From Macrostomum lignano (taxonomy: Eukaryota), in NCBI GenBank assembly GCA_002269645.1, contig NIVC01000884.1, forward strand, positions 124,001-188,000: 64,000 nucleotides of DNA. Reading direction: 5' to 3'. Numbering within the stretch: the first letter of the stretch is position 1; each line of letters starts with the position of its first letter. Made by a program: the position numbers and the translations under genes. Shown piece by piece: positions 3,157 through 48,399 of this stretch. A model generated the notes under the pieces. That model did not search any database. It had not been told where the DNA came from and saw only the letters and a program-made list of their open reading frames with translations.

Positions 3157-6100
3157 ATGGCCAGCCACGAATCGAATCAGCAGCAGACTGGCTGCTCAGA
3201 AGATGAAGAAGAAAAAGAGATCAGCACTGAGGAGCGGCTTGGCATCGAACAGTTTCGACGAGTGAAGGCAAGAACGAAGTCTGCAGCAACTAGGAGTCGA
3301 AACCGTCTGGTACTGTTGCTACAGAGCGACACCGATCATGGAGCGATCCAGCAAGCGTGCGATGCAGCCACTACAGCACACGAAGAGTGCGTGAAGCTGC
3401 TTGACGAATTCTATGATGAGCTCCTTCAGCAAGAAGCCACAGAAGAAGCTCGAGACAAACTTCTGGACGAGCTGGATCAAGTGGAGCAGCAGTTTCAAGA
3501 CACTATGAAATGTGTCACTCAGTTCATCACTGCTCATCAGACTGCCGTGACAGCTGCGCCTGCGGCGACTGCCGCGACTGCGGCGACTGCCGCGACTGCC
3601 GCGACTGCGGCGACTGCGGCGACTGCTGCGACTGCCGCGACTGCCGCGACTGCCGCGACTGCCGCGACTGCCGCGACTGTGACGACTGCGACGACTGCGG
3701 CGACTGCCGCGACTGCGGCGACTGCCACGACTGCCGTAACTGCCGCGACTGTGACGACTGCGGCCACTGCGGCCACTGCGGCGACTGCGGCCACTGCGGC
3801 GACTGCCGCGACTGCCGCAACTGCCGCGACTGCGACGACTGCAACGACGGCGACGATGGCGGCGACGACGGCTACGGCAATGCCGGTTGTGAGTGCCAGT
3901 AGTATTGATGACTCTGTAAGTGAGGCGGGCCATTCTCAGACTAGCAGCAGTGAAGCCGAGTTGGCAAAAGATCTTTGGAAGATGCTTCGGCGTGTAGAGA
4001 TTCCAAAGTTCGGCGGCGAAAAGCAGCAGTACGAATCTTGGAAAGCCGCCTTCACTGCTTGCATTGATAGAGCTCCTGCCACGCCGGAGTTCAAATTGCT
4101 TCAACTCCGACAGTATCTTCAAGGGCCGGCTTTGAAATTAGTCGAACATCTGGGTCACTCTGCCGCTGCTTACGAGGCTGCCAAAGACAGATTGGAACGC
4201 GAATTTGGGGGCAGCCGCCGACGTATCGCTATGTATCTTGAAGAGCTCGATAACTTTCCACCCATCCGCTCCACCAATGCAAAAGAGCTCAAGCAATTCT
4301 CTAATCTGTTGGATGTCGCAGTTGTAAATCTCGAAGAGTCTGGTAAGGTCTCAGAATTGACTGACGGGTTGTTGTACGCAAAGTTGCAGAAGAAGCTCCC
4401 TGAGCAGATGGTGGCGCGTTACCGGCGTTGGCTATTCGAAGGACATAGGCAGGAGAACGTAAAGATGTTACGTGAGTGGGTGCTGATGGAGGCCGCTTTC
4501 CAGACAGAAGCCATGGAGATTGTGCATGGTGTGACGAGTGAAGAGAAGGTTAAGAAGGAGACGCGGTCCAAAACGTTTCTTGCAGATCATCAACAAGGGT
4601 CTCCGTCAAAATCTTGTATGCTGTGTCAAGATCAACATGAGCTGTGGAAGTGTCCAACATTTAGACAGCTGTCAATTGAAAATCGGTGGAAGGCTGCGCA
4701 AGATTCGAAATCATGCTTTTGCTGCTTAGCTCGCGGTCACGCTGCTCGGCTATGCCGTCATGGACGCCGATGTGGAATCGGTGAATGCAACAAGTTTCAC
4801 CACCGCTTGCTGCACTCAGACGAGGCTGCAAAAACTGAGTCGAAGAAGAATTCTCCGGCCGAAGGAGGCAAAAAGAGCGCTGAGTCGGGTCGCAAAGGAG
4901 CCGCCGTAACTATGATGGCAGGAAGTGGAAGTGCAACGTCGCTGCGAACAGTTCCAGTAGTTCTCAAGGCTGGCGGCCGTGTAGTGAAGGTGAACGCACT
5001 GTTGGACGACGCGAGTACAAGGACGTATGTGAATGCGGAGATTGCTGAAGCTCTGGGACTGGAGGGCAATATGGAGCAAGTGAAAGAGAACGTTCTGAAC
5101 GGACAGACAGAGACATTCTTGACAGCTCCGGTTACGATGACGCTCGAAAGTGTAGATGGAAGTCTGAGTCGTCCGATCACGGCATTCACGACAGACAGCG
5201 TCACCGGGAAGTTGAAGGCTACGGATTGGCAGACGACGGCAGCAGATTGGAAACATCTGGAGCGCATTCCATTTTCTCAGCTCCACGCGCCGCATCTCAT
5301 AGACCTGCTGATAGGAGTAGATCATGCGGAGTTACACGTGTCCTACCGAGAAGTTCGCGGTGGCCCTGGGGAGCCACAAGCACGTTTGACTCCCCTTGGA
5401 TGGACAGGTGTGGGTCCAGTAGAACAGATTCAGCATCAGACAAACTTGGCCAGCACCTTTTTCTGTGTCACCAGCGAGGAGATGCTGTCACCAGTGCTGC
5501 GCAAGTTCTGGGAGGTCGAAGAAATCCGGCCAGCTCAAGATCAAAATTGGACAGCGGATGAGCAAGCTGCAGTCGAGCAAGCCAAGTCTTCATTAAAGCT
5601 AACAAACGGCCGATACCAGGTGGGAATTCCGTGGAAGCCAGAGGCGAAAGTTCGCTCGAATAACTATGAGATGGCGATCAAGCGGCTTTGCAACACGGAG
5701 ACCCGGTTGAAGAAGGATCTGGAGGTGGCAAAGCAATATCAAGCATGTATAGAGCGATATGAGCAGCTAGGCTACATCAGGCGCGTTGCAGTAGAAGAGT
5801 TCTCGGCCAGAAGGTGTTTTCTACCGCATTTCCCGATTATTCGATTCGACAAGCTGACGACAAAGGTTCGGATCGTCTTCGATGCCTCGGCGGGCGGAAA
5901 CGAAAAGTCGTTAAACTCTCTGGTCTTCCCAGGGCCGAAGCTTCAGCGAGAATTGTTTGACGTTCTGCTTCGCTTCCGGAGAGATGCGGTGGCTGGGGCT
6001 TGTGATGTGTCCGAGATGTACCTCCAGATCGAAATGGCGCCAGAGGACAGGCCGACGCATAGCTTTCTACACCGTGAGATGGACTCCAGCAAGCCTGTTG

Positions 6101-6885
6101 AAATATTTGAGACCAACCGCATCGTTTTCGGCAACTTGAGCTCGCCGTTTCTTGCTCAGTTCGTAGTTCGTGAGCATGCGGAACGCCTGAAAGAAGAGCT
6201 GCCATTAGCTGCAGACGCTGTTCTCAACTCCACCTATATGGACGATTGTTTAGATTCGGTCGGGTCAGAGGCTGAGGCGATCCAGCTGCTTCAAGAGTTG
6301 AAGACTCGCTGGGAGCGTGCAGGCATGCACCCCAGGAAATGGATGTCCGATTCGCGAGAACTGTTGAGCAGAGTGCCACCAGAAGATCGAGTAGCCGAAG
6401 TAACATTGGAAGGGACACCGATGCCATCCATCAAGACGCTTGGTGTAGAATTAAGAAGCGATCGGAAAGAGTGCACCTTTAAATTTGACCAGCCGTTTGG
6501 TGCGAACCGCATTGGAGAGACCAAGTTTGTCACAGATCCGGACCAGTGGAGGTGTGTCACGACCGAATTCAATCCAGTCGACGCGTTGTCTCGAGGAACT
6601 TCAGCGCAGCAGCTGACGGAGGTTGACAGCTGGTGGCATGGACAAAGGGTGACTGGTCGGAGCACAGTCGTTAGCATGAATGAGGAACGATCGGCGGTCA
6701 GACGATTAGACCCGACCATGGCGACCTGCAGGTTCTCGAGCTCAAAGCGGCGCATCTGCATGCAAGGCGAGACAGCTCGATTCGCGACCACCTGCTGGCT
6801 GCAGCGGAGAGACGGGTGCGAGTTGCAAAAGTGCAGCTGGTTGGCAAGGCCTCCGCGAGGCCGATTGCGAGGCCGCGTCCGCTAA
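3157..6885 (+). CDS. BEL/Pao gag-pol polyprotein (truncated)
   Basis: Gag-like region (EIPKFGG..YESW), Cys/His knuckles (CMLCQDQHELWKC, CFCCLARGHAARLC, CNKFHHRLLH), protease ALLDDAS, RT (RIVFDASA, YMDD), RNase H tail (WRCV..NPVDALSRG). The RNase H core and integrase are missing. Confidence 0.92.
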   Translation: MASHESNQQQTGCSEDEEEKEISTEERLGIEQFRRVKARTKSAATRSRNRLVLLLQSDTDHGAIQQACDAATTAHEECVKLLDEFYDELLQQEATEEARDKLLDELDQVEQQFQDTMKCVTQFITAHQTAVTAAPAATAATAATAATAATAATAATAATAATAATAATAATAATVTTATTAATAATAATATTAVTAATVTTAATAATAATAATAATAATAATAATATTATTATMAATTATAMPVVSASSIDDSVSEAGHSQTSSSEAELAKDLWKMLRRVEIPKFGGEKQQYESWKAAFTACIDRAPATPEFKLLQLRQYLQGPALKLVEHLGHSAAAYEAAKDRLEREFGGSRRRIAMYLEELDNFPPIRSTNAKELKQFSNLLDVAVVNLEESGKVSELTDGLLYAKLQKKLPEQMVARYRRWLFEGHRQENVKMLREWVLMEAAFQTEAMEIVHGVTSEEKVKKETRSKTFLADHQQGSPSKSCMLCQDQHELWKCPTFRQLSIENRWKAAQDSKSCFCCLARGHAARLCRHGRRCGIGECNKFHHRLLHSDEAAKTESKKNSPAEGGKKSAESGRKGAAVTMMAGSGSATSLRTVPVVLKAGGRVVKVNALLDDASTRTYVNAEIAEALGLEGNMEQVKENVLNGQTETFLTAPVTMTLESVDGSLSRPITAFTTDSVTGKLKATDWQTTAADWKHLERIPFSQLHAPHLIDLLIGVDHAELHVSYREVRGGPGEPQARLTPLGWTGVGPVEQIQHQTNLASTFFCVTSEEMLSPVLRKFWEVEEIRPAQDQNWTADEQAAVEQAKSSLKLTNGRYQVGIPWKPEAKVRSNNYEMAIKRLCNTETRLKKDLEVAKQYQACIERYEQLGYIRRVAVEEFSARRCFLPHFPIIRFDKLTTKVRIVFDASAGGNEKSLNSLVFPGPKLQRELFDVLLRFRRDAVAGACDVSEMYLQIEMAPEDRPTHSFLHREMDSSKPVEIFETNRIVFGNLSSPFLAQFVVREHAERLKEELPLAADAVLNSTYMDDCLDSVGSEAEAIQLLQELKTRWERAGMHPRKWMSDSRELLSRVPPEDRVAEVTLEGTPMPSIKTLGVELRSDRKECTFKFDQPFGANRIGETKFVTDPDQWRCVTTEFNPVDALSRGTSAQQLTEVDSWWHGQRVTGRSTVVSMNEERSAVRRLDPTMATCRFSSSKRRICMQGETARFATTCWLQRRDGCELQKCSWLARPPRGRLRGRVR
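3545..3880 (+). repeat. In-frame 9-bp repeat (ACTGCCGCG/ACTGCGGCG) encoding (Thr-Ala-Ala)n inside gag
   Basis: Seen directly; the reading frame is preserved across it. Confidence 0.95.
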
Positions 6886-7906
6886 TCACGAAGGGAGGCT
6901 TGAGGACGGAGTAGTTGAGATTTTGGCCAAGCTTTAGTTTATTAAAACAAATTTGCGATGTAGCGATCATTTCCTTAACTTTGACTAGCCGTTGCATGCG
7001 TTTCAATTTTCGATGTTTTCAATTTCAAGCTATTTTGGTGATGGGTTGGCGCTACATTTTTCTTTTGTGGCTTTTGAGAGCTTTGCTTCCCTGCGCATTA
7101 AATCCAGTTTGGTTCCATCGCATTGTGTTTTTTCATGTCTGCTGTCTATTTTTGGGAGTTTTTGTTGTCTGTTTTTTGTGTTTGTTTTCTGTTTTTTTTT
7201 GTGTTTTTTTGCTTTTTTGGCGTTTGTTGCGAAGAGGTTTTGCATACTCTGTTCGGTTAATTTTCCCATTTTCAGCGTTTATCCCCTTTGCTCATTTCAT
7301 CGCACTGTACGCTACTTTTTAGGTTCAACTCTGTTGTTAATCCAGTTCGAATATTTATCACACCCCCTGATCCGTTTACTGCATCTAATTATTTGATCCG
7401 ATTTTCACTTTGTCATTTTGTCGAGCGTATTGCATCCTAGCGATTTAACTTTTTTCCTGAAAAGTACGCGGTACTATAATAATTGAATGTTTTAATTTTA
7501 AGATCTTTGTTCGAGGTGCTCTTTGTTGTGTTGGCATGTGCTCATGCCAAGAAGGGAGGTATGGATTGAAGAGTAAAGGTTTTGCTTATTTCATTGTACT
7601 TCTGTACTATTACTCATCATTTGCCTAGCTAATTTACCTGCCCCCCTCCGCGCCTCACGCCACTTTCTCACCCCCCCATTCTGATTTGGTTAGACGTACG
7701 AGTACATAGTAAGTCATGCACACTTACAACCCCCCCCCGCGCTAAAGCCTGTGTCAACTCCGCCATATATTATATTGAGAATAAATATACCTAGCTCAAG
7801 AGTAGACTGCGAAACCCCCTTGGTGATTTTGTTCTGCTACGATTGTCAATTGCGAGGCTAGCCGCCAAGTGCTGAGTTCTCAGTTCTTAAGAATCTCTTG
7901 TTAACA

Positions 7907-8443
7907 GATGTGTTGTCAAAACTGGATTGTCATGGATGTGTTGTCAAAACTGGATTGTCATGGATGTGTTGTCAAAAATGGATTGTCATGGATGTGTTGT
8001 CAAAACTGGATTGTCATGGATGTGTTGTCAAAACTGGATTGTCATGGATGTGTTGTCAAAACTGGATTGTCAGGGATGTGTTGTCAAAACTGGATTGTCA
8101 GGGATGTGTTGTCAAAACTGGATTGTCATGGATGCGTTGTCAAAACTGGATTGTCATGGATGTGTTGTCAAAACTGGATTGTCATGGATGTGTTGTCAAA
8201 ACTGGATTGTCATGGATGTGTTGTCAAAACTGGATTGTCAGGGATGTGTTGTCAAAACTGGATTGTCATGGATGTGTTGTCAAAACTGGATTGTCATGGA
8301 TGTGTTGTCAAAACTGGATTGTCATGGATGTGTTGTCAAAACTGGATTGTCATGGATGTGTTGTCAAAACTGGATTGTCATGGATGTGTTGTCAAAACTG
8401 GATTGTCATGGATGTGTTGTCAAAACTGGATTGTCATGGATGT
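7907..8443. repeat. 28-bp satellite, block 2
   Basis: Same unit as 1881-2782. Confidence 0.97.
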
Positions 8444-8790
8444 TGGATTGAAGAGTAAAGGTTTTGCTTATTTCATTGTACTTCTGTACTATTACTCATC
8501 ATTTGCCTAGCTAATTTACCTGCCCCCCTCCGCGCCTCACGCCACTTTCTCACCCCCCCCATTCTGATTTGGTTAGACGTACGAGTACATAGTAAGTCAT
8601 GCACACTTACAACCCCCCCCCCGCGCTAAAGCCTGTGTCAACTCCGCCATATATTATATTGAGAATAAATATACCTAGCTCAAGAGTAGACTGCGAAACC
8701 CCCTTGGTGATTTTGTTCTGCTACGATTGTCAATTGCGAGGCTAGCCGCCAAGTGCTGAGTTCTCAGTTCTTAAGAATCTCTTGTTAACA
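8444..8790 (+). mobile_element. Solo LTR of the BEL element
   Basis: Copy of the LTR flanked by GATGT on both sides; no PBS follows. Confidence 0.95.
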
Positions 8791-9489
8791 GATGTGTTGT
8801 CAAAACTGGATTGTCATGGATGTGTTGTCAAAACTGGATTGTCATGGATGTGTTGTCAAAACTGGATTGTCATGGATGTGTTGTCAAAACTGGATTGTCA
8901 TGGATGTGTTGTCAAAACTGGATTGTCATGGATGTGTTGTCAAAACTGGATTGTCATGGATGTGTTGTCAAAACTGGATTGTCATGGATGTGTTGTCAAA
9001 ACTGGATTGTCATGAGTGTTTTATTAAAACTGGACTGTCAGGGATGTGTTTTTGAAAGTGGATTTTCGTGTTGTCAAAACTGGATTGTCATGGATGTCTT
9101 GTCAAAACTGGATTGTCATGGATGTGTTGTCAAAACTGGATTGTCAGGGATGTGTTGTCAAAACTGGATTGTCATGGATGTGTTGTCAAAACTGGATTGT
9201 CATGGATGTGTTGTCAAAACTGGATTGTCATGGATGTGTTGTCAAAACTGGATTGTCAGGGATGTGTTGTCAAAACTGGATTGTCATGGATGTGTTGTCA
9301 AAAATGGATTGTCATGGATGTGTTGTCAAAACTGGATTGTCAGGGATGTGTTGTCAAAACTGGATTGTCATGGATGTGTTGTCAAAACTGGATTGTCATG
9401 GATGTGTTGTCAAAACTGGATTGTCAGGGATGTGTTGTCAAAACTGGATTGTCATGGATGTGTTGTCAAAACTGGATTGTCATGGATGT
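8791..9489. repeat. 28-bp satellite, block 3
   Basis: Same unit. Contains a variant segment (CATGAGTGTTTTATTAAAACTGGACTG...GAAAGTGGATTTTCG) that recurs in block 4. Confidence 0.97.
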
Positions 9490-9835
9490 TGGATTGAAGA
9501 GTAAAGGTTTTGCTTATTTCATTGTACTTCTGTACTATTACTCATCATTTGCCTAGCTAATTTACCTGCCCCCCTCCGCGCCTCACGCCACTTTCTCACC
9601 CCCCCATTCTGATTTGGTTAGACGTACGAGTACATAGTAAGTCATGCACACTTACAACCCCCCCCCCGCGCTAAAGCCTGTGTCAACTCCGCCATATATT
9701 ATATTGAGAATAAATATACCTAGCTCAAGAGTAGACTGCGAAACCCCCTTGGTGATTTTGTTCTGCTACGATTGTCAATTGCGAGGCTAGCCGCCAAGTG
9801 CTGAGTTCTCAGTTCTTAAGAATCTCTTGTTAACA
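9490..9835 (+). mobile_element. Second solo LTR of the BEL element
   Basis: Copy of the LTR flanked by GATGT on both sides. Confidence 0.95.
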
Positions 9836-10318
9836 GATGTGTTGTCAAAACTGGATTGTCATGGATGTGTTGTCAAAAATGGATTGTCATGGATGTGTTG
9901 TCAAAACTGGATTGTCATGGATGTGTTGTCAAAACTGGATTGTCATGGATGTGTTGTCAAAACTGGATTGTCAGGGATGTGTTGTCAAAACTGGATTGTC
10001 ATGGATGTGTTGTCAAAACTGGATTGTCATGGATGTGTTGTCAAAACTGGATTGTCAGGGATGTGTTGTCAAAACTGGATTGTCATGAGTGTTTTATTAA
10101 AACTGGACTGTCAGGGATGTGTTTTTGAAAGTGGATTTTCGTGTTGTCAAAACTGGATTGTCAGGGATGTCTTGTCAAAACTGGATTGTCATGGATGTGT
10201 TGTCAAAACTGGATTGTGATGGATGCGTTGTCAAGACTGGATTGTCATGAGTGTGTTATTAAAACTGGACTGTCAGGGATGTGTTTTTAAAAGTGGATTT
10301 TCGTGTTGTCAAAACTGA
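9836..10318. repeat. 28-bp satellite, block 4 (decaying end)
   Basis: Same unit, degenerating just before the GPCR start codon. Confidence 0.95.
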
Positions 10319-10357: not shown

Positions 10358-13296
10358 ATGGAAGTCACTGCAGCAAAGGCTAACTCTTATAACCTTTACA
10401 GTAAATGCTACTACAGCGAGTAGCGGCAGGAACGCCAGAAGTCCAACTCTCCTGTCCGCTCTGACCGCATCCAACAAAGTGCTCAACTATCTTCGCTTGT
10501 ACGCGGCACCATCGCTCTCTCTTCTGGCCATCGTTGGCGCGGCCGTGGTGCTGTACTGTGCCATCAGGTCCTGGCGTCGAGTGAAGGGCAAGGATCTCGT
10601 GCTGTGCTGCTTGGCTGCGGCTGACATGATCACCGCCGTCTGCACGTGAGGAACTGGCGTTAGGCGTAGAATTTCGCATTTTATAAAGCTTCTGGTACGA
10701 ATAGAGCTGCTGGTACAAGTAGAGCTTCTGGTACAAATAGATTATTATTTTTATTAGAAGCAGGGGTTGTGTGCACCCTGGCGCACTTTAAGCGACATAG
10801 GCTCACAACCGGCGAGAGGCATTACTGCCCATTCCGCCGACTCCCTGAGCAGGCATACAAGCGCGCGGATACGTACGCAGGCACACACTCACACAGGAGT
10901 GTACAGCGGCTCTAACTTTATATTATCGTTGGGCATGTACACTTCACTGCGCCTTGGGGGGTTGGCTCTCAAGGCCGTTAATTGCACGAGCAGAGCCAAG
11001 CCGAGATTCCAATTCAGCCCCAAATTAATGTACAAGTAGAGCTTCTCTTACGAATAGAGCTTCTGGTACAAGTAGAGCTTCTGGTACAAGTAGAGCTTCT
11101 GGTACAAATATAGCTTCTGGTACAAGTAGAGCTTCTGGTACAAACAGAGCCTCTGGTACAAGTAGAGCTTCTGGTACAAGTTGAACGTTGAGTGTATGGT
11201 GCAGGTCATTCAGAGAATGGTACAGGAGGTTGACAATATGGTGCAGGACGTTGACAGCATGTTTCAGGACGTTGACAGCATGGTGCAGGACGTTGACAGC
11301 ATGGTGCAGGACGTTGACAGCATGGTGCAGGACGTTGACAGTATGGTGCAGGACGTTGACAGCATGGTGCAGGACGTTGACAGCATGGTGCACAACGTCC
11401 CAAACATGGGTGCAGAACGATGAGAGCTCAGCTTCCATGAACCAAGCTTTCAGTGCACGCAGCCTTAGAAACTGGAACTGACAGCATTGATGTAATTCTA
11501 AGGGAAGCAACGAAAAAACTCGGGGATCTGTGAGACGAAACTGTGACACAGAATCCGGACACAAGATGTGTCTGTGACAGTCCACTCGGGACATTCTGAG
11601 CCGCTAGAATCCTTTGCAAATTATCCCAGTTGGGGCTCTATTAAATTGAATTCAGTCCCTGTCTGAACCTAATCTATCTGCCAACCAAAGGGCTTCTCAT
11701 TTTTATTTCAGATCATCAGATCATTATATCGATTTTTTGTCAAAAAGAAATAATTACTGCGAAAGTAATTACATTTAATAGCAATCATTTTCTAAGTAAA
11801 ACAAGCTCTCGCTGTACTTTTGTAAAATATTCGGCATATATCAAGCTTTCTTTTCGCTCATGCTTTTATTAATTTCTTAATTTCTTAATTTCTTCCTTCA
11901 TCACTCATTCAGTTATTTATTTATTTATTCATTCATTCATTCATTTATTCATTCGTTTATTCATTCATTCATTTATTTATTCATTCATTCATTCATTCTT
12001 TCACCAACTCGACTGCATTCCCTCAACCCTCAGGCTGCTCTCTCGCGAGTTTCTGAGCTCCGGCCTGGGCCTCCAGATGCCGCAGGTGCAGCTGGGCTGG
12101 GTTTGCCAGTTGTGGTCCTTCTTCTGGATCCTCAGCAACAGCCTGTCGTCCAACTTTCTCTGCCTGCTGGCCGCCGACCGAGTCTACGCGTTGAGCTGGC
12201 CTATGCACCACCGGGTGCACATGGCGAGGACCAGGTGAAGACTTGATTAATCGTAATTTCTTCTTTTAGAGCTTATAGCATAGTGAAGCCCCACTGTTCA
12301 CTTCAAACGAAGGCCGTAGCTCAGTGTTCCTGGCACGGCGTTATGATGTGCCAGCGACCCAGGCTCGATTCCCAGTGCAGTCACATTGATTTGGGGCTGA
12401 AATGAAATCTCGGCTTGGCTCTGCTCGTGCAATTAACGGCCTTGAGGGCCAACCCCCAAGGCGCAGTGAAGTGTACATGCCTAACGATAGAATAAAGTTA
12501 GGGCCGCTGTACACTCCTGTGTGAGTGTGTGCCTGTGCTCTTGTGTGCCTGCTCAGGGAGTCGGCGGAATGGGCAGCAATGCCTCTCGTTGGTTGTGTGA
12601 CAATGTCGCTTAAAGTGCGCCATTTAATCTTCTTCAAGCCTTCCACCGAGGAGCAACAGTTCCCCTTAGTTAATCATTCCCTAGCAACATCGGCAAGCCC
12701 CATCGCCCAACCTCAGGTACTCAGTCACCGTAGCCGCATTCGTCCTAGCCTTTGCCGTCATCGCTGTCCACGGCGTGCTGGTGTACGACGCCTACGAGTA
12801 CTTCGGGTCTCGCTATTGCTACGTGGCCCTGACGGTCAGTCCGGCAGTCAACATGGCCGTCCAGGTGTACACCAACGTGGTGATGAATGGCTTGCTGGCC
12901 GGGGTCTGTCTCGCCTCGGCCAACATCTACCTGTGCGCTCGGATCCGCAAGATTCACTTCGACAAAGCCCGCCTCACCGGCAGCGACAGCGGGCCAAGCA
13001 GTGGCGAGCTTCGAAGCAGCGTCACCTTGGTGATCCTCGCCTTCGTACACCTCGCCGCCTCGGTGCCGCGGGTGGTGGCCTACACCTGGCACTTCACGCT
13101 GTACACCCAAGACGAGGAGCGTCGCGCCGATCCGACCTTCCAGCAGCTTCTGTTCTCGCTGGCTAACAACTTCAATTACCTGTTCTTCATCAACAGCTCG
13201 CTGAACTGGCTGATCTACTGCATCCGGGTGCCAGCGTTCAGGGCTCAGCTGGGGTGCCGGCGGAACCGCGGCTCCGACAGTGCCAGCTCGCAGTGA
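10358..13296 (+). CDS. Class A (rhodopsin-like) peptide-type GPCR, 3 exons
   Basis: Exons about 10358-10645, 12034-12234 and 12717-13296 with GT-AG borders and matching phases (2/2). TM2 LAAAD, TM3 DRVY, ECL2 Cys, TM7 NSSLNWLIY. The ATG at 10358 joins the frame only if one T of TTT at 10395-10397 is removed, giving MEVTAAKANSYNLTVNATT; otherwise an unidentified upstream exon is needed. Confidence 0.88.
10685..11180. repeat. 18-bp minisatellite (TAGAGCTTCTGGTACAAG) split by a SINE
   Basis: Units lie on both sides of the SINE at 10741-11030. Confidence 0.85.
10741..11030 (-). mobile_element. SINE family A copy, 5'-truncated
   Basis: Reverse-complement homology to 12311-12635. Lacks the tRNA head and ends in a TAA-rich tail. 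Confidence 0.8.
11215..11392. repeat. 21-bp minisatellite (GCAGGACGTTGACAGCATGGT), intronic
   Basis: Tandem units in GPCR intron 1. Confidence 0.9.
11905..12000. repeat. (ATTC/ATTT)n microsatellite
   Basis: Seen directly. Confidence 0.9.
12311..12635 (+). mobile_element. tRNA-derived SINE, family A (most complete copy)
   Basis: Head AGGCCGTAGCTCAGTG (A-box-like) to GGCTCGATTCCC (B-box-like). The body is shared with 10741-11030, 32575-32885, 38265-38468 and a diverged copy at 58430-58635. Confidence 0.8.
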
Positions 13297-14564: not shown

Positions 14565-15323
14565 CTAATCCTTGCTAGCCTTGAACTCCTCCTCTAGAAA
14601 GAGGCTGAGCAGCTTTACTTTGTCCTGCAGACCACATGGCTCAATTAGGCTTTTCACTTGAGCATAGAGCCTCATCAGACGATCATCAGGCTGGAGAAAC
14701 GCCAGCTGATCCAATGTTGGCGGTGCCTCATGGCATGGGATCGACCGCAGCCGCTTGCAGCTCTCACAGGCGCTGTCCAGATTGCCCAGTCTCTCTGCGG
14801 CCAGCAAGTTAGCGGCCAGGGTTCTAACCTGGAGCTGGTTCTCTGCCCATTGTTTTCTCCTATTCAGGTAGGACACCTGCTTGTTGGCCCAGTTCCCCAC
14901 CTGGTCAGTGAGGAGCTCCATTGCGCTGCCTAGCGATGCGATCGTCTTCTCCTGCTTAAATCGGCATATTTGCAGCTCCAAATCGCAAACGCTGATCGTC
15001 TGCTCCAGATCGGCTTTGCTGTCCACTTCAAGTAGAATCCTTTTAGCCAGTTTGGCTCCCTCTTGGGCCATCTGGACTCGTCCAGCATTAAACAGGGCTC
15101 TCAGCTGCTCAACTCGAAAGTCCTTGGTCAGCTGGTCAGGTTGTTGGTTGGTCACCTTGCGGCACTCCGGACAGCAGAGTGTGCCAGATCTGCGATAGAC
15201 CTCCTGCAGACAGCCCAGGCAGTATGAGTGCAGGCAGGGCAACGCCCTGGGGTCTTTCATCTCCTCACAGCAGATTCCGCATTCGGTGAGCGAGCTGTCA
15301 AACTCGTCACTCGCTCTGGCCAT
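14565..15323 (-). CDS. C3HC4 RING-finger / coiled-coil protein (TRIM-like E3 ligase, no clear B-box)
   Basis: CGIC-x11-CLHSYCLGC-x12-CPEC followed by a helical region; single exon, 252 aa. Confidence 0.85.
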   Translation of the reverse strand: MARASDEFDSSLTECGICCEEMKDPRALPCLHSYCLGCLQEVYRRSGTLCCPECRKVTNQQPDQLTKDFRVEQLRALFNAGRVQMAQEGAKLAKRILLEVDSKADLEQTISVCDLELQICRFKQEKTIASLGSAMELLTDQVGNWANKQVSYLNRRKQWAENQLQVRTLAANLLAAERLGNLDSACESCKRLRSIPCHEAPPTLDQLAFLQPDDRLMRLYAQVKSLIEPCGLQDKVKLLSLFLEEEFKASKD

Positions 15324-22555: not shown

Positions 22556-24486
<1,931 letters not shown>

Positions 24487-25281
24487 AAGGATGCAGAGAA
24501 GTCAGTATGTTTGAAATTGATGCAACAAAATTGTTTTGAGGATCTGTTTAAAAAATTAAGTCTCAGCGCCGATGTTTATGACATAGACTTTTAGGTTGAA
24601 ATTTCCCATAAAAACAGCTTTTTCTGTCTACCCAGAGATTTTATTCCGGTCGCAAAATGTTTTTAGCTCTGTCCCGAAGTTTGAAAGACAAGCATTGTTT
24701 GCAGTCATTGTTAAGCTACTTGCAAAAATAAAGTTTTTTATGCAAATCTTTTTAGTGCATGGGGACCAACCTAATGCATTCAAAGTCGAAAGCAATCAAA
24801 ATAGGGTTGGGGAAAATGAGGACAAATTTGTTTTGTATGCCGAGTTAGCGATCTGTAACGCCTTAAATGGACGTCCAGGTACATTTTAAAGCACTTGGGT
24901 ATCTTCCTGTAATTCGGGTATCTTTAGGTATCCACATCCAGGCATCTCTATGTATCCAGGTATCTTTAGGTATCCAGGTATCTTTAGGTATCTTTAGGTA
25001 TCTAGGTACCTTTACTGGTGGGTATCCAGGTACATGTGTACCTTTACGCATCCACGTACCTTACAGTATCTAAGACATGTTGTGGCAGTTCGTGTTAGAA
25101 ATACCCTTAAAAAACTGATTTAGTTAAATACAATCAATGTTTCACTTAAGTCTACTACTGGCAGTAGGGTGTAAGAAATTGAAAATCCTGTTGTTCCTCT
25201 GAGACGAGAGTATTTAAGGAGGTAAATTGACGCATTTGCTTCTCATGGGAAGAGCAGTTTAAGAGCACAACTGACCAAGCC

Positions 25282-26062
25282 ATGAAACTCAGCCAGCATC
25301 TTGCAGCTCTGGCTATTCTACTCAACCTGGCTCACCTTGGTTCGGCCATTCAACCCATCACGGAATCTGATGCTAGTCCTAGCAACGTAAGTTTCATCGA
25401 TTTCAACCTGACGACTATTTTTTAGAACCTTAGACCTTCCACACCCCAGTCAACAGTGTCAGACATAAAGATCTACATCTAAATCTAAATCGTTTTCGTA
25501 GAATATGGATGTTGAATAGTCCGCAGTGAGCTTGTCTTTAGTTCCCCCATGTACTTACGAAATACTCGTAATTGAAGACTTCCCAAGCCAGTAGAGCATC
25601 TGATTTATTTCACAGCGGGCCTTTACTTACAAATGACACGGTTAAAGAACTTTTCAAAAGCCATGCTTCCTTAACTGCTGTGGGGTTCTGCTGCTTGTCA
25701 CTCGTCCAATTCATCCGCTTTAGCCGAGCAATCCTCAGGTTGACGGTGCCGCAAAACTTCTGACCCGGATGAAGTCAGTTGCACTGCGACTCGGCGATGC
25801 TGAACGCAAGATGCACCTGGCTGCGGAAGCTCTCCACAGAGTCACTTCCGGTGACAAGCTAAAAGTGACGCCGCCGAAGCCACAACTCCAGGAGCCGCTA
25901 AAGAGGCAGCACAACCGTTTGTACACGCAGCCAAGCCGGCTTGAACTGTCCCGCCAGCTGGACGCCGAAGTCAGCGCAGCCAAGCTGCCTGGCGGGGACG
26001 CGGCCTGTCTGTTCCATCCGATCTCCTGCTACGGCAGGCCCATGGAGCTGCATGCGAACTAA
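25282..26062 (+). CDS. Secreted neuropeptide precursor with allatostatin-C/somatostatin-like C-terminal peptide, 2 exons
   Basis: Exon 1 25282-25386 encodes a signal peptide (MKLSQHLAALAILLNLAHLGSA) and ends at a GTAAG donor, phase 0. Exon 2 runs from 25724 (or 25739) to 26062. It has a KR site and the C-terminal CLFHPISCY-G-R. Confidence 0.78.
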
Positions 26063-26329
26063 GCGGAACTGCAGGGGTTGCCCTGCTCACAATTAAGATT
26101 CAACTGTAGTGGAAGTACTTGAGTCTCGATAAATCTAAATAAAGTTTTCACTGACTCGCTCGTAAATTAGCGAGATTGGATATTTTAGTTAGTTTATTAA
26201 CCATAAACAGCCTCAATCGTTAATTAATCCACACACAATTCAAAAAAGCATAAAAACTTGCGGGCTTGTCGGTTATCACCGACACAGAGTAAATGAGGAG
26301 TAGCATTTCTAGAGAGAGAAAATATATAA

Positions 26330-27242
26330 GCACTCAGACAGCAGAGTTCAAGCACTGAGACAGGAGAGCTCAGGCACTGAGACAGGAGAGCTCAGGCACT
26401 GAGACATCAGAGCTCAGGCACTGAGACATCAGAGCTCAGGCACTGAGACAGCAGAGCTCAGGCACTGAGACATCAAAGCTCAGGCACTGAGACATCAGAG
26501 CTCAGGCACTGAGACAGCAGAGCTCAGGCACTGAGATAGCAGAGCTCAGGCTCTGAGATAGCAGAGCTCAGGCTCTGAGATAGCAGAGCTCAGGCACTGA
26601 GACAGGAGAGCTCAGGCACTGAGACATCAAAGCTCAGGCACTGAGACATCAGAGCTCAGGCACTGAGACAGCAGAGCTCAGGCTCTGAGATAGCAGAGCT
26701 CAGGCTCTGAGATAGCAGAGCTCAGGCACTGAGACAGGAGAGCTCAGGCACTGAGACATCAAAGCTCAGGCACTGAGACATCAGAGCTCAGGCACTGAGA
26801 CATCAGAGCTCAGGCACTGAGACATCAGAGCTTAGGCACTGAGATAGCAGAGCTCAGGCTCTGAGATAGCAGAGCTCAGGCTCTGAGACAGGAGAGCTCA
26901 GGCACTGAGACAGGAGAGCTCAGGCACTGAGATAGCAGAGCTCAGGCTCTGAGATAGCAGAGCTCAGGCTCTGAGACAGGAGAGCTCAGGCACTGAGACA
27001 TCAGAGCTCAGGCACTGAGACAGGAGAGCTCAGGCACTGAGACAGGAGAGCTCATGCACTGAGACAGGAGAGCTCAGGCACTGAGACAGGAGAGCTCAGG
27101 CACTGAGACAGGAGAGCTCATGCACTGAGACAGGAGAGCTCAGGCACTGAGACATCAGGGCTCAGGCACTGAGACATCAGAGCTCAGGCACTGAGACATC
27201 AGAGCTCAGGCACTGAGATAGCAGAGCTCAGGCTCTCAGACA
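26330..27242. repeat. 22-bp minisatellite (CTCAGGCACTGAGACAGGAGAG)
   Basis: Tandem units with an internal CTCAG-nnn-CTGAG palindrome. Confidence 0.95.
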
Positions 27243-27694
27243 GGACAGCTGTTGTCTCACTGACTACCTCACCAGCTCATCTCACCCAGAGATTCTCTAT
27301 CTGGCGGATGTGAGAATTTCACCCGATTAGAAATTTGGCACATTACCAAAAATGGATTTCTGAAATAGCTTAAAAAGGAAAAAATCCCTCCAAAGCAAAC
27401 GGCTTTTTGTGGAGCTTGGGAAGATGGCTTATCCTTAAGAATTTAAGGCTCAAATATTGCGAAATCGCTTTACTGGAATCTTGTTACTTCTTTAAAGATC
27501 TGTGTAAATGGAGAAAATTGAATTTTCGAAAAAATATTTAATCCCGAATTTGGTTTAAACAATTTCCAAGTCCATGCTTTCTCAAGTATATAAGTGTCTT
27601 TCATTGGTCCGCCTGTCTTAGTAGCCTGGAGCTGCCCTTCTTTGTATGCACCTGTGATAGAAACCTGTGAGAATATACTGCTTAACATAGGGAG

Positions 27695-28155
27695 AAGGTT
27701 GAGGGAGGGAGAGATAGAGAGGGGGACGATAGAGAGAGGGAAAGGATAGAGAGAGGGAGAGGATAGAGAGAGGGAGAGGATAGAGAGGGAGAGAGGATAG
27801 AGAGAGGGAGAGGATAGAGAGGGAGAGAGGATAGAGAGAGGGAGAGGATAGAGAGGGAGAGGATAGAGAGGGAGAGAGGATAGAGAGGGAGAGGATAGAG
27901 AGGGAGAGGATAGAGAGGGAGAGGATAGAGAGGGAGAGAGGATAGAGAGGGAGAGAGGATAGAGAGAGAGAGACGATAGAGAGAGGGAGACGATAGAGAG
28001 AGGGAGACGATAGAGAGAGAGAGACGATAGAGAGAGGGAGACGATAGAGAGAGGGAGTGGACAGAGAGAGGGAGAGGATAGAGAGAGGGAGAGGATAGAG
28101 AGGGAGAGAGGATAGAGAGGGAGAGAGGATAGAGAGAGGGAGAGGATAGAGAGAG
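27695..28155. repeat. GA-rich (GAGAGGATAGAGAG) low-complexity array, continuing at 30372-30472
   Basis: The same repeat lies on both sides of the 28156-30371 insertion. Confidence 0.9.
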
Positions 28156-32124: not shown

Positions 32125-33680
32125 TGGCTTTAGAGTTCTAACTCAAATCGAGTTCACCAAACCTTGTCACCGAGTTCGCCCAGGTGACCAGATCGGTTGC
32201 CAGCAGCAAGATTCACTGCGCCGCTTTGTGCAGCAGCCGCAGCTACTGTCGGACATTCAGCTACTCACCGGACAGCTCCGAGTGCCGGATGTCAAACCAG
32301 AACGGAGGCCTCGCCAGCTTTGGTCTACCTGAGTACAGCCTCGGTCATAGGAGGCGCGCAAGCGAAGCAAGTGAGCAGCTAATTAACTTGGAAGAGAACA
32401 ATTCATCAGTTTTCAGGACTGTCAACATGGATCGATCTGTATGCAGATATAACAGCAACAGTGTTAATTTTAAGATGGGTCTCGAGCGCACAAACGCACA
32501 CAAAGACGAACATATCTGTTCTGACTTTTCAGCTTCAGGTGGTAAATACACTCAGTGCATTTTTAGTGGCAGCTGGCTGTGTGCACCCTGGCGCATTTTA
32601 TGCGACATTGTCACACAACCGGCGAGAGGCATTTCTGCCCATTCCACCGACTCCCCTGAGCAGGCACACAAGCGCGCGGATACGTAAGCAGTCATACGCA
32701 CAGGCACACACTCACACAGGAGTGTACAGCGGCCCTAACTTTATTTATAGTTAGGCATGTACACTTCACTGTGTCTTGAGGGGGGTGGTGGCCCTCAAGG
32801 GCGTTAATTTCACGAGCAGAGCCAAGCCGAGATTCCAATTCAGTCCCAAATTAATGTGACTGCACTGGGAATCGAGCCTGGGCCAACAGTAAGCCTCACG
32901 AGCGCAAACGTCCTGGAGAGTGATAAAAGTATCCAAAAAAGAGAAAATCCAACCATTCAATGGACACACATAACACCTCCACAGACACCGGATCTCAGTG
33001 CAAGCGTAACATAGTGACCATGACTGACGGTCGACAGTTCTGCCCCATCCAGCAGCGGGTGAGCGACACCAGCTTCGAGCAGTCGTGGAGTGCGTACGAG
33101 ACCGGTTTGGGCGACGATTTAAACTACTTGGTGAGTCGTCCATTTTAAGCTTCAACTCTTAGAGTATTGACATTGTTTCGTTTACTAATAAAAAGTGATG
33201 GAATTAATTGTGATTTTTACCAATCGGCAGGCCTAGAAGCGATTCACCAGCTCAGCTCGGCTGTCGCCAACGGAGTCACTCTTCTCGTCCAAGTTGTGAC
33301 CTGGGAGGACGACGAGCTGCAGTATCAGGAGTACTCGAACTTTCTCGTCCAAAACGCCAGCACAAACTACTCGTACGTCATGACTGTCGGGCCCGTTGAT
33401 TCGGCGAAATCGAACGCTAAGGAAAGTAAACTAAGCCTTAGCAACGGAGGTATGTTCTCAACTACGGATCGGGATAACGATATGCTTACAGCCTCCTGTT
33501 CGAATAAATATCACGGAAGAAGCGGCTGGTGGTTCCGAGGCTGCACCCTGTTCAATCCGAACGGAGTGTACTCTCGCTGTACCGGCGGTTGGTCACGGGG
33601 AGCACAGGTGGATGAGCTGGAAACGCTCCAGCGTTTGGAAGTCGCTGAAGGCGACGCGTCTGCTGCTTCTGATCGCCTGA
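32125..33680 (+). pseudogene. PAN-FReD paralogue 2, pseudogene
   Basis: Exons 32125-32370, 32985-33130 and 33231-33680. TAA at 32139-32141 where paralogue 3 has CTA. Exon 3 is 146 nt versus 150 nt (YWIG becomes YL). A further frameshift lies before the terminal WMSWK..SLKATRLLL. First exon not identified. Confidence 0.8.
32575..32885 (-). mobile_element. SINE family A copy in intron of paralogue 2
   Basis: Homologous to 12311-12635; retains the B-box part of the head. Confidence 0.8.
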
Positions 33681-36630
33681 TTCGGGAAATTGAACGATGA
33701 TACTAATTGACTGATCAACTATTGTTAAATACACTGGGAGACAAATAAAGCGGCTCATGACACTTGTGATGTCCAATGTCTACTACTGATACAGAATGCC
33801 GCTGCAATGTAGCAAAAACAAAAGATTTTAATTTCGATTTTGGATACTTGCTGTGATCGATGCTTATTATTGGTGTGTTTTTATTCAAATTTCTTCCTTG
33901 AACAAAAAGCTCAAATGACAAACCTTGAGATCGTAATTGCTTGATTGTTCGAGTTTGAAGCAGTCTTAAGCTCGACAAGCGTGGACAACGGAAGTTTCTA
34001 AGACAGGAGGAAGCTACACTAGATTTTCTTAGAAATGAACTGTACGCTGGTAAGCAACATATATATTTGTCGTATCGCTGCAGTGCAGTTAGTGTACTCT
34101 TGAGAAATCTGGAGGGGGGTCTTTCTCGAAAGCGACTTCCGGTGTGCCATAGACGTAAGTTAGGGAGGAAGCACTTATAGTTTGCTCGAAAGGCTCGCAA
34201 CTTGACGCGACGTACGATCGATCGCAACTTTACGCAAAGGACAGTTTCTCGAAAAGAGAGTAAGTCTATGGTCCTGCTTAATATCGATCGTAAATCTGCG
34301 CCTGTTCGAGACCAAGCGAAAGTAGACATGAGCCCCCAACTTCATTCTCATCAGAGACCATCGCGCATCTAACCGATCCACTCGGGGCCGATGAGCTGCT
34401 CAGACACAAACAGACCGTTCGGATTGGAACGGGCGCATGCGTTGAACCACCAGCCGCCGCTGCCGTGGTAGGCGTTCGAACAGACAGCCGCAAACATGTC
34501 GTTGTCCTGATCCGTGGTAGAAAACATCATGCCGTTCTGGTAGTCAAGATGGTTAAAATCAATATTCGAACTGTTAGAAACGATGGGTCCAACTGTCATT
34601 GTGTAATTCGAGTGGAGATCCCGAACGCTGAAGTTGGAGTACACCTGGTAGAGCGACTCGTTGCGCCATGTGACCAGTTGAACTAGCAGAGCAACTCCGT
34701 TAGCATCGCACGAAGTAAGCCGGTGTATGGCTTGCAGACCTGCGGGAGTTGCGGCCCGTGACTTTCCAAAACAGGCACGACACGTGTTCCGTGGGAAATA
34801 TGGCAGGCATGGATAGGTAAATCAGACTTGCACTTAAAAATCGAGCTAACTTGCTTGACAGCTTTCGGTTTTCGCCTCAAACTTCATGGGCGTGACAGTT
34901 AATAGCAGTTATCGATTGGCTTGAAAAAACTTGATTCCGAAATTATAAATGAGTGATATTAGGCATTGAGTGCTATGCGTGTAAAATCGAATGCGAATAT
35001 GCATTAAAACTACTGTTAGTAGTTTCCGTTTGAGAGAATATTAGTTAAGGTTAGATAAGGGGTTAGCATGATTCAGTAAGAATAAGGAAGCAGTTGGTTA
35101 GGAGGCCCTAAATTCTTGCCCCTAGTTTTGTCTCGCATAGAGACGCCTAACCGCAGTACCACTGTGACACTTGTCTCTGCCTGGCTGAAAGCTTGTAATG
35201 AGTTAGTAGGCTGGGTTGGAGGGTAATAGTCGATCAGGAAGGGCTGTGGGTAGCTGTATGGGAAGGCAGGCCTAACCTGTTCCAGTTGATGCTCTGGCGG
35301 AGTGTCCTCCCTCCCTCGGAGTGTCCTCCCTCCCTCGGGGTGTCCTCTGAGCGAACAGCCAGCGACTCTATTAAAGCTGGAGTGTGCCAGAACCAGGACT
35401 GAGTCTGACCAGGACGGGGCCGTTGGCACGGCCTAATAGAAATGGCGGGTTGGCGAAGCAAAGGGTGAAATAGTCCCGGCGATTAGCCCTCCTGCCGCTT
35501 CAAAGATAAGAGACTGTCAGGCAAGAGTACCCGGGGTTTAGTGAGGGGGGGAGGCTCCTCGAGGGTAGCCACGGCCGTGGGGGCGGTCAAATGACCGGTT
35601 TTTGGCTCTTCTAACCCGGAGAAGGCACGGGCTTCCCTGATTGGTTCACTCAACCCCCTCTGGCCCCGGGTAGGTTTTGATTTGAGCTTGGAGTAGGCTT
35701 AACGCCCCGAAGGCAGGGGGTAGGGCCCGCCCTTTGCCCGACTGGTGTTGCCTGCTCAGCTTGTTGGCCACAGTCACTCTCACTCTAGCTTAGAAACCTT
35801 GTGTACATTCGTACACTCCCAATCTGGAACCCAAATTATCACGTGTGGCGTAAGAGCCTGCTCAATGGCTGAGGCGCCAGATTTACTTATTTTAGTTAGT
35901 TAGTTAGAGGCCCCAAAAGTCTCGCCTCTGCTAATTCTGAAACTGTAAAACATTTTGCTACTCAAAATCGATATTATTATACGCTAAATAAAAATTTTAG
36001 AAAAGACAGAAGGGAGAGAGGAGAGAAAATAGGGGAGGGGAGGAAAACGGAGAGAACTGAGAAGAGAGCTGAGAAGAGACACAAACCTTGAGCGGGCCGG
36101 ATTGCTATTGTGAAGTTTCAAAGGACCCGATCAGGGCCGGGTAGAGAGGCTTCTGCCGACCCCTGCCCTAGACCGTTCGATCACATGCTGTAATACAGCA
36201 TTTTGAAGAGTCAGAGAGCCGAGCTCACCAATCCAGTAGTTGATATCGTCGCCGAAGCCAGACTCGTAGACAATCCATGGCTGCTGAAAGTCGGCGTCGC
36301 TCACCCGCTGCTGCATGGGGCAGAAGTGGCGACCGTCAGTCATTGTCACGATGGTACGCTTGCACGGAGACCCGAAGGCTGTTTGCGTAAAGTAATCAAT
36401 AAATTAAAACTATTTGCAGCATTTCAATCGAACGGAACTGGTGAATGATGTTGTTCTTCATTTTGTAGTTAGCCAGCGTTCTTCAAAGAATATAAAACAG
36501 CTTTTTCCTAATACAAACGTTTATTCAAGTCCGATTAAACCGTTAAAAATGTTAAAAATGAGATTTGATTTAAAGGCTGGGCCTGTTCGAGTGACTTCTG
36601 TCACCTCACCTGCCCGTTCTTTCAGGCCGG

Positions 36631-46100: not shown

Positions 46101-48334
46101 CCGCCGTTGCCGCTGCTGCTGCCACCGCCGCTGCTGCCTCCTCCAGGAGCATCGGCATCGACCTGCAGCCGGATGAGGAGCCGCTTCGCTGACTCAGCGT
46201 CCTTTATTGCCGCCGGCAGCGCTCTGCGTGCTCGTCGATTTCCGCCCTGCCGGTTTCCGGCGCGGCAGCGACGCTGGCGACGGCGGCGAGGCTGACCGAG
46301 GCTGACGCAATCTGGTTGTCGGCGGTGAACTGGTAGTTGCTGAGCTCGGCGTGCAGGCGGTAGTCCTTGGCCGTGACCTGGGCGGTGGGTGCGGGATTCG
46401 ATTTTAAGACTGTAAGTTCCTCATTATCCCAATGGAGTTCGGCGATAATCCACATTATCCCAATTGAGTTCGGCGATAATCCTCATTATCCCAATTGAGT
46501 TCGGCGATAATCCTCATTATCCAATTGAGTTCGGCAATAATCCTCATCCCGATTGAGTTCGGCGATAATCCTCATTATCCCGATTGAGTTCGGCGATAAT
46601 CCCCATTATCCCAATTGAGTTCGAATGTGCTCATAACTCATAACTCATTTTCGACTCATGTCCCTCTTCACGAAGCCCGAACACCCCACGCACGTGTCCG
46701 CAAAGAGTTTACCTGCCGACCGACTTTCTGATTGTTACGAACCAGGCCTTCCTGCAGCAGGTCCAGAGCCTCCTGCACCAGCTGCTGCTGCTGCTGACTG
46801 CCTCCAGCAGAAGCGGCAACATCAGCCACTGGCACCGGGAGTCGCAGCAGAGTCTGGTTGAATCGCAACGACTCGGCGATGTCTCGAAGTCCTTTGGCGC
46901 CGATTCTGTTGCCGTCCAGTTGCAGCACAACCAGGCTGCTGTTGACGAACAGCGCCTTGGCGAGAACTTTGGCGCTTAATTCGCCGGCGCCATTGTCGGA
47001 GATGTCCAGGCGGGTGAGGTTGTTGCACTCGCCCAGCGCGTTCAGCAGCACACACAGGTTGCGCTCCAGCTTGGCGCCTCTGATTGACAGAGAGGTCAAC
47101 CTCTGAGGTGGGGTCAAAGGGGGGCTCTACTTGCGAGTGTCTCCTTTCTGTAAATCCCCTGTGTCATGTCTCATCTACCTGTGTCATGTCTCATCTACCT
47201 GTGTCATGTCTCATCTACCTGTGTCATGTCTCATCTACTCCTGTCATGTCTCATCTACCTGTGTCATGTCTCATCTACCTGTGTCATGTCTCATCTACTC
47301 CTGTCATGTCTCATCTACCTGTGTCATGTCTCATCTACTTGTGTCATGTCTCATCTACCTGTGTCATGTCTCATCTACCTGTGTCATGTCTCATCTACTT
47401 GTGTCATGTCTCATCTACTTGTGTCATGTCTCATCTACCTGTGTCATGTCTCATCTACTCCTGTCATGTCTCATCTACCTGTGTCATGTCTCATCTACCT
47501 GTGTCATGTCTCATCTACTCCTGTCATGTCTCATCTACCTGTGTCATGTCTCATCTACTTGTGTCATGTCTCATCTACCTGTGTCATGTCTCATCTACCT
47601 GTGTCATGTCTCATCTACTTGTGTCATGTCTCATCTACTTGTGTCATGTCTCATCTACCTGTGTCATGTCTCATCTACTCCTGTCATGTCTCATCTACCT
47701 GTGTCATGTCTCATCTACCTGTGTCATGTCTCATCTACTCCTGTCATGTCTCATCTACTCTTTTCATGTCTTATCTACTCCTGTCATGTCTCATCTACTC
47801 CTGTCATGTCTCATCTACCCCTGTCATGTCTCATCTTTAAGCTTTAATGAAAGGCTCTAATAGAAGTTAAATTTTCATCAATTTTACTTCTCATTTCTGA
47901 TCACTGCCATTCTCTTTCTTGCCCATTTTTACTCTTTTTATAAAAAATTAACCTCCTTCTTTTGTTAATTTTTCCCAAGCCATTAATAAACACCAAAGCA
48001 GCAAGATTTGCTCACGCATTTGTCCTCGGTAACCAGCTCTGAGAACTCCTGTATCATAGACTGATCCCTGAAAATTGGTTTATGGCAAAGCTTGGGTTGA
48101 GAGCAGGGGTAAACAATAAAACCTGTTGCTAACCACAGTGGGTAATAAATTAAGCAATTACTTTTTCGCAAAGCCTCGAAAATTATTGCCTCCAATGGAG
48201 AGGTGCCGAACAGAGGACTTGCGAATGGAATCAACCAACGGGTTCGTGCCCGCACCGAAGTCTGGGTTGGGTCAAAGGTGAACGCATTGTAAATGGGCGA
48301 TCGCTGACTGACTGACTAACGAACTAACTAACTG

Positions 48335-48365
<31 letters not shown>

Positions 48366-48366
48366 G

Positions 48367-48399
<33 letters not shown>

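Follow-up and report, generated by a model that had tools for sequence, protein, structure and literature searches.

We analysed 64,000 nucleotides of the genome of the flatworm Macrostomum lignano (assembly Mlig_3_7, GCA_002269645.1; contig NIVC01000884.1, positions 124,001–188,000, forward strand; this whole stretch is the window, and all coordinates are positions within it) and found a gene that, judged by its sequence, quite likely encodes an allatostatin-C (AstC)-type neuropeptide precursor. The gene probably has two exons and a product of 147 residues that carries the core CLFHPISCY close to its C-terminus. It would be a new member of a known family and not a new kind of system; what makes it of interest is its phylum and the mosaic character of its motif. 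An initial annotation of this DNA had proposed a spliced precursor of about 147 residues, and the reading frame bears this out, as 35 and 112 codons join in frame across a phase-0 intron. The gene contains the following parts:

25211–25218, plus strand: TATA-like box TATTTAAG, 64–71 nucleotides 5′ of the ATG, located by direct search; its function is presumed.
25282–25386, plus strand: coding part of exon 1, 35 codons starting with the ATG at 25282; translation MKLSQHLAALAILLNLAHLGSAIQPITESDASPSN.
25282–25347, plus strand: predicted signal peptide MKLSQHLAALAILLNLAHLGSA, with Gly at −3 and Ala at −1.
25387–25723, plus strand: phase-0 intron of 337 nucleotides, GTAAGT...pyrimidine-rich...TTTAG; the splice is predicted from the sequence.
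25724–26062, plus strand: exon 2, 112 codons and a stop codon (26060–26062), with the pro-region, the AstC-type peptide, Gly-Arg and a seven-residue tail.
25901–25906, plus strand: Lys95-Arg96; the window copy has no other dibasic site, and a cut here would give a 42-residue peptide that starts with Gln.
25952–25954, plus strand: Arg112, candidate monobasic site, with Arg107 at P6 and Gln113 next (possible pyroglutamate); the predicted product has 26 residues.
26006–26032, plus strand: the core CLFHPISCY.
26033–26038, plus strand: Gly139-Arg140, predicted amidation donor and basic cleavage residue.
26039–26062, plus strand: tail PMELHAN and stop codon.
26138–26143, plus strand: AATAAA polyadenylation signal, 76 nucleotides 3′ of the stop codon, located by direct search.

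The 3′ edge of exon 1 is exactly the GTAAGT donor at 25387, and exon 2 opens at 25724 with the first in-frame AG acceptor (...ccgctttAG/CCG) that follows the pyrimidine-rich ...catccgctttAG; a second in-frame AG at 25739 is an alternative acceptor that would yield 142 residues. The initial annotation held that the signal-peptide exon is missed by the list of open reading frames (ORFs); this does not survive a lowering of the list to ORFs of at least 30 residues, in which the exon appears as an ORF of 47 residues. The hydrophobic core of the N-terminus reaches 2.4 on the Kyte-Doolittle scale, and 13 residues of the pro-region follow the predicted signal peptide in exon 1 (the signal peptide was judged by hydrophobicity and the −3/−1 rule alone). 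When both strands of the window were scanned for an ATG with a signal-peptide-like start that runs into a GTRAGT donor, exon 1 was the single match, in what was a crude scan with thresholds set after the candidate was already known. The exons (GC 0.58–0.60; GC at third codon positions 0.63–0.68, with exon 2 at 0.68) resemble other coding exons within the window in composition; the intron has a GC content of 0.41 and the flanks 0.37–0.40. The gene forms a 1.3-kb unique island between an 18-nucleotide minisatellite (24936–25014) and a 22-nucleotide minisatellite (26330–27250). At 25245–25262 (+), downstream of the TATA-like box and ahead of the main ATG, lies a short upstream ORF, MGRAV*; its membership of the 5′ untranslated region (UTR) depends on where transcription starts.

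The product contains only two cysteines, C130 and C137, separated by the six residues LFHPIS and followed by a C-terminal aromatic residue (Tyr); the AstC-like spacing on which the initial annotation rested is thus present in the spliced product. We scored this core with a nine-position matrix built from the ten distinct AstC cores in Supplementary Table 3 of the Aplysia AstC paper. CLFHPISCY scores 21.6 bits, and the runner-up among the 80,347 stop-free six-frame 9-mers of the window scores 9.3 bits; 21.6 bits alone would be expected to recur by chance a few hundred times in the 760-Mb genome, so the context of the motif matters. We then used a hidden Markov model (HMM) of 24 aligned AstC, AstC2 and AstCC precursors from brachiopods, nemerteans, molluscs, annelids and arthropods (Thiel et al. 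2021 supplement, PMC8557429). Against approximately 1,050 window ORFs of at least 30 residues and 2,000 shuffles of the candidate, the model matches the candidate only (26.4 bits, E 1.7e-6), and the best shuffle reaches 9.8 bits; when the per-ORF probability is scaled to the approximately 12 million ORFs of the assembly, the chance expectation, by extrapolation, is ~0.007. Profile–profile alignment (hhalign) gives a probability of 93.4% and E 2.5e-7 over 15 columns (DAACLFHPISCYGRP), and BLASTP against the Pseudaletia (moth) precursor gives E 4e-4. The initial annotation had called the precursor allatostatin-C/somatostatin-like. The matrix, the HMM and hhalign uphold the first half of that name; the second half falls, that is, by its motif the precursor is AstC-type and not somatostatin-type, because the Trp-Lys motif (FWK or C.WK.C) is not present in the Cys loop, which contains neither Trp nor Lys.

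The published rules for the family are that the loop always has six residues in protostome AstC, that an aliphatic first loop residue is found in molluscs and annelids and an F-x-P motif is common in ecdysozoans, that there is one peptide copy per AstC gene, and that a phase-0 intron lies in the N-terminal pro-region of all SS/ASTC genes examined (PMC7536072, PMC9048919). The candidate shows all of these features: a six-residue loop, an aliphatic position 1, F-x-P, a single copy of the peptide near the C-terminus (nine residues from the precursor end) and a predicted phase-0 intron after codon 35, 13 residues past the predicted signal-peptide cut. Its core also follows the family pattern (aliphatic/aromatic, F/V, N/H, P/A/V/I/L, I/V/L, S/A, Cys, aromatic), and each core position has a precedent in published AstC. 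The length of 147 residues falls within the 77–155 residues of the references, all but one of which (23 of the 24) have a basic or Gly-basic end, as does the candidate (Gly-Arg/Gly-Lys). Gly and a basic residue also follow the core in nemertean, brachiopod and Platynereis AstC, and the ending CY-G-[KR] also occurs in nemertean AstC and AstC2. The initial annotation was right that Gly-Arg follows the core; it had the product end there, and the protein continues for the seven residues of the tail. Tails after the peptide have precedents in Daphnia ASTC3 and in a chiton AstC.

The nearest published cores share six of the nine residues with the candidate: nemertean AstC2 (CFFHAVSCY-GRK; CFFHAVSCYGRK), the chiton cores CLVHVLSCY and CMVHLISCY, and arthropod CYFNPISCF. 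Compared with these sequences, the M. lignano core is a mosaic of lineage features: molluscs and annelids also have Leu at position 1, arthropods share F-x-P-I-S, nemertean AstC2 and chitons likewise carry His where Asn is common, and nemerteans show the same Tyr-Gly-basic end. Nemertean AstC2 (e.g., Notospermus geniculatus ...KRDYVRDCFFHAVSCYGRK; PMC8557429) has the same C-x6-C spacing, Phe at position 2, His at position 3, Ser at position 6, and Tyr after the second Cys followed by Gly-Arg, that is, the six shared core residues together with the GR; like the candidate, it is a single C-terminal copy in a short precursor with a signal peptide. It differs in having Lys-Arg five residues before the first Cys and Ala-Val where M. 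lignano has Pro-Ile, and its precursor ends straight after G-R-K whereas that of M. lignano adds the seven-residue tail. In arthropod AstC (‘PISCF’; Manduca sexta pQVRFRQCYFNPISCF), F-x-P-I-S-C-aromatic is identical save for x and Y/F; however, position 1 is Tyr, position 3 is Asn, the peptide is non-amidated and KR lies six residues before the first Cys. The mollusc and annelid peptides (receptor-verified Aplysia SHYSSMCMFNVVACY, Platynereis pQPVQCLVNIVSCW-amide, Helobdella CLFSIISCW and chiton CLVHVLSCY) resemble the candidate in the aliphatic position 1 (Leu), the Tyr end in molluscs, the amidation in Platynereis and the His in chitons, but have Val, Ile or Leu where M. lignano has Pro and a dibasic site 3–7 residues before the first Cys. 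Somatostatin and SSRP-like precursors share the C-terminal disulfide loop, the single copy, the phase-0 pro-region intron and the related receptor class; they differ in the Trp-Lys motif and in loop size (10 residues in somatostatin-14).

How the peptide might be released can be read, with varying confidence, from the basic residues of the precursor. Upstream of the motif, the KR and the monobasic R/K sites listed in the initial annotation are all there (KR95-96, R100, R107, R112 and K122), and two of the three genomic copies described below have an additional Arg-Arg at 73-74. A monobasic rule, in which a second basic residue lies 3–6 positions upstream of the cleaved one, has been reported for nemertean precursors, and cleavage of this pattern has been seen by mass spectrometry in a nemertean (PMC8557429); the arrangement of Arg112 and Arg107 is consistent with it. 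Lys122, seven residues before the first Cys, would release a 16-mer of typical AstC size, and has no supporting basic residue upstream. We propose that the precursor would enter the secretory pathway and lose its signal peptide after Ala22, that a Cys130–Cys137 disulfide would close the six-residue loop, that a prohormone convertase would cut after Arg140 and a carboxypeptidase would trim the Arg, and that amidating enzymes would turn Gly139 into a C-terminal Tyr-amide. N-terminal release, the least certain processing step, may occur at Arg112 (a 26-mer with pyroglutamate), at Lys-Arg96 (a 42-mer) or at Lys122 (the 16-mer). The computed monoisotopic masses of disulfide-bonded, amidated forms are 1659.754 Da for LPGGDAACLFHPISCY-NH2, 2655.246 Da for pQLDAEV...CY-NH2 and 4634.291 Da for pQHNRLY...CY-NH2. 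Neurons or endocrine cells would secrete the cyclic amidated peptide, whose target, by analogy with AstC in arthropods, Aplysia and Platynereis, may be a G protein-coupled receptor (GPCR) of the somatostatin/AstC type (rhodopsin gamma).

The locus is present three times in Mlig_3_7, in the window and in two further loci, L003 (NIVC01002603.1) and L004 (NIVC01000418.1), with approximately 96–99% identity; the additional AstC-like copies lie at L003:530–1337 (−) and L004:480–1481 (−). We found them through a RING neighbor of the gene, a 252-residue ORF at 14565–15323 (−), for which two near-identical relatives are annotated as M. lignano hypothetical proteins, by inspecting 10 kb around each relative; the RING ORF lies 10 kb from the AstC-like gene in the window and 8.5–8.7 kb from it in L003 and L004. 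A triplicate locus fits the recent duplication known for the M. lignano genome. The TATA-like box, start codon, donor, both acceptors, open frame, motif, stop codon and AATAAA are preserved in every copy. Neither exon 1 nor the core shows any nucleotide difference among the three; exon 2 has 12 differing sites, of which 8 are synonymous (third positions) and 4 non-synonymous (H73R, T84P, D127N and R140K). Given that the frame offers 110 synonymous and 331 non-synonymous sites, 8 synonymous differences out of 12 correspond to P=0.0028 and an omega of ~0.17; the other two sense frames give synonymous:non-synonymous ratios of 1:11 and 2:10. In the R140K substitution, L003 carries Gly-Lys, so the basic character is preserved. 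The exons are free of insertions and deletions; the 337-nucleotide intron has 14 substitutions and, in L004, a 1-nucleotide deletion and a 191-nucleotide insertion. The 132 nucleotides 5′ of the ATG have one differing site versus the 14 in the intron, and the 110 nucleotides 3′ of the stop codon are invariant; compared with the intron, conservation is higher in the promoter region, in exon 1 and in the 3′ UTR (Poisson P 0.01–0.03). This substitution pattern is typical of a constrained coding frame.

Several observations nevertheless weigh against the AstC assignment, and most of them would suit a lineage-specific secreted peptide that uses a different receptor and whose Cys loop is AstC-like by convergence. 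The profile similarity spans only ~15 residues, and the pro-region is without detectable homology. The usual dibasic site beside the peptide, found 0–7 residues before the first Cys in 21 of the 24 published precursors, is missing; because the nearest such site, Lys95-Arg96, is 33 residues before the first Cys, unusually distant for the family, either the N-terminus is made by a monobasic cut or the peptide is of unusual length (in the remaining 3 of the 24, of the AstCC type and from one Daphnia gene, N-terminal processing must likewise be monobasic). On the other side of the loop, the Arg or Lys is followed by Pro, which is unfavorable for convertases after Arg, and no Lys or Arg occupies P4, P6 or P8, so cleavage and amidation are uncertain and a non-amidated form that retains the tail is possible. 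Zamanian et al. 2011 reported zero receptors of the somatostatin/opioid/galanin group (rhodopsin gamma) in Schistosoma mansoni and Schmidtea mediterranea; SSTR2-like sequences have since been claimed for S. mediterranea in a BLAST-based paper. There is also a published warning that short motifs may converge (PMC8851493). However, every residue of the loop has been seen at its position in a published AstC, and the whole pattern, aromatic residue and Gly-basic end included, stands 12 bits above the rest of the window; the C-terminal position, the single copy and the phase-0 pro-region intron also match the family; and the limited extent of the similarity is what AstC precursors generally show, since the references have a mean column identity of 18% and little in common beyond the peptide. 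We regard convergence as unlikely, and an AstC-type precursor as the better account of the gene.

Other objections concern whether the gene is a gene at all, or is the one we have drawn. It is known from genomic sequence alone, with its transcription and splice predicted, and neither an annotation nor a homologue was found: a word-indexed search of 5.8 billion clustered proteins with the 147-residue product gave nothing at E<=10, an exhaustive phmmer search of 1.84 billion representatives with exon 2 produced no credible match, and metagenome contigs scanned with a degenerate DNA pattern for CLFHPISCYG had none (the collections searched contain few flatworm sequences or transcripts, and absence outside M. 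lignano is to be read accordingly). The three copies diverge by just 2–4%, so alike that an intact frame could persist unselected for some time; the constraint test rests on 12 sites; and codon usage, by which the sense frame of exon 2 is the best of the six, favors it weakly, with a score that is marginally positive. These points would be expected of a non-functional, unexpressed or decaying ORF with a chance motif that was copied in the genome duplication. Such an ORF would have to combine the top match to the AstC profile, with its extrapolated assembly-wide expectation far below one, with the window's only exon that has a signal peptide and a donor, in frame and 337 nucleotides upstream, with a suitably placed TATA-like box and AATAAA, and with both the 8:4 synonymous excess and the greater conservation of exon 1, promoter and 3′ UTR over the intron; we judge this improbable, and more so than convergence. 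A different gene model is the least probable of the alternatives, and we give it little credence in either of its forms. Exon 2 without exon 1 could encode a non-secreted protein of 97 residues from an ATG-started ORF (25769–26062, Met51), for example by trans-splicing, to which many M. lignano mRNAs are subject, at the 25724 acceptor; this protein would have no signal peptide, although exon 1 has every feature of one and does not vary among the three copies. The coding strand could instead be the antisense strand, in which the frame with shared wobble positions also gives 8:4, so that the synonymous test cannot choose the strand and we turned to starts, stops, codon usage and the orientation of signals. 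Stop codons interrupt the antisense frame across exon 2, and the longest open stretch of that frame (25735–25983, −) is a shadow ORF of 82 residues with a TTG start and without an ATG; over the span of that ORF the codon usage is −11 bits for the antisense versus +2.5 bits for the sense strand, and the TATA-like box and AATAAA are oriented for the plus strand. The two-exon AstC-type gene on the plus strand is the reading that we retain.

The same database searches returned a lone phmmer match, to a 5,751-residue protein, that we rejected as spurious because it has no aligned stretch. Pfam has no family for the product, an exact look-up of the 97-residue ORF found it not to be on record, and a full-text search for ‘FHPISC’ retrieved no paper. 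The remark in the initial annotation that AstC ligands are poorly documented in flatworms agrees with the searchable literature, in which no AstC-type ligand is described for the phylum (closed-access surveys lay outside the scope of this search). None is listed in published surveys covering planarians, schistosomes, tapeworms and one polyclad, and papers on the evolution of AstC and somatostatin are without mention of flatworms. A mollusc-centered survey used Schistosoma, Schmidtea and Taenia, and the sole M. lignano sequence in its supplement is an AstA-type precursor; a polyclad single-cell study gives a ‘Somatostatin/AllatostatinC’ precursor for oyster only; and a helminth review enters the presence of somatostatin as ‘Unknown’. 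A 2026 review states that many ancient peptides were lost in planarians and parasites, and names ‘Asta-C’ in a figure key only (polyclads, xenacoelomorphs) and not in its text.

With respect to a receptor, Aplysia AstC acts on a rhodopsin-gamma GPCR of the somatostatin/AstC type. The window contains a very divergent gene resembling a seven-transmembrane (TM) receptor (exons 12050–12236 and 12718–13296, +), 12 kb upstream of the AstC-like gene and on the same strand, with a DRV motif where TM3 ends and NSSLNWLIY in TM7; its family match is to Pfam Srw alone and is sub-threshold (19.5 bits versus a cut-off of 22.2). We rejected this gene as the receptor, as it has no similarity to Platynereis AstC receptor 1 (E=5) or to solved GPCR structures.

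The remainder of the window contains both genes and abundant repeats. A retrotransposon ORF of 1,242 residues (3157–6885, +) encodes DUF1759, an aspartyl protease and a reverse transcriptase, and its N-terminal part is broken by a long Ala/Thr-coding trinucleotide repeat. Exons for a secreted-type protein with a fibrinogen C-terminal domain (PF00147, E 8e-17) lie at 32184–33700 (+), 6–7.6 kb downstream of the AstC-like gene; a Cys-rich stretch in the same protein, read from the translation, is putatively PAN/apple-like. Leucine-rich-repeat exons at 46668–56102 (−), with a weak hint of a CARMIL PH domain, are separated by a 4.2-kb tandem array (50170–54424) that is free of stop codons in two frames and gives rise to false ORFs of 1,300–1,400 residues. 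Mini- and microsatellites are abundant (1879–2849, 7898–10219, 24000–24486, 24936–25014, 26330–27250 and 27689–28155) and include 487 bp of (AGTT)n and 42 copies of the 22-nucleotide unit directly after the AstC-like gene; because many of these repeats yield long spurious ORFs, genes in this genome are not reliably recognized by the length of an ORF alone. A search of the window for tRNA genes was negative, and a scan for bacterial-type promoters and terminators, a method unsuited to a eukaryote, saw nothing.

Among the large spiralian phyla, flatworms have the sparsest record of ancient bilaterian neuropeptide systems, and M. lignano, an early-branching, free-living macrostomorph, is a laboratory model with transgenesis, RNA interference and a sequenced genome. 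The gene is absent from the protein sets searched, and homology-based surveys would have overlooked it. Its identification makes testable the question of whether the flatworm ancestor had AstC signaling that derived lineages later lost; that M. lignano retains working AstC signaling that planarians and parasitic flatworms lost is, at present, a tentative proposal to which we give somewhat less than even chances. If M. lignano also is without a rhodopsin-gamma receptor, the peptide would need a receptor of an unrecognized type. Under the proposal of retained signaling, the ligand would unite the ecdysozoan F-x-P-I-S-C core with the spiralian Leu at position 1 and Tyr-amide end, which would suggest the F-x-P form as the ancestral protostome state and would lend weight to the relationship proposed between protostome AstC and the SS1 peptides of echinoderms, which contain F-x-P; a spiralian F-x-P data point bears on the debated relationship among AstC, echinoderm SS1 and somatostatin.

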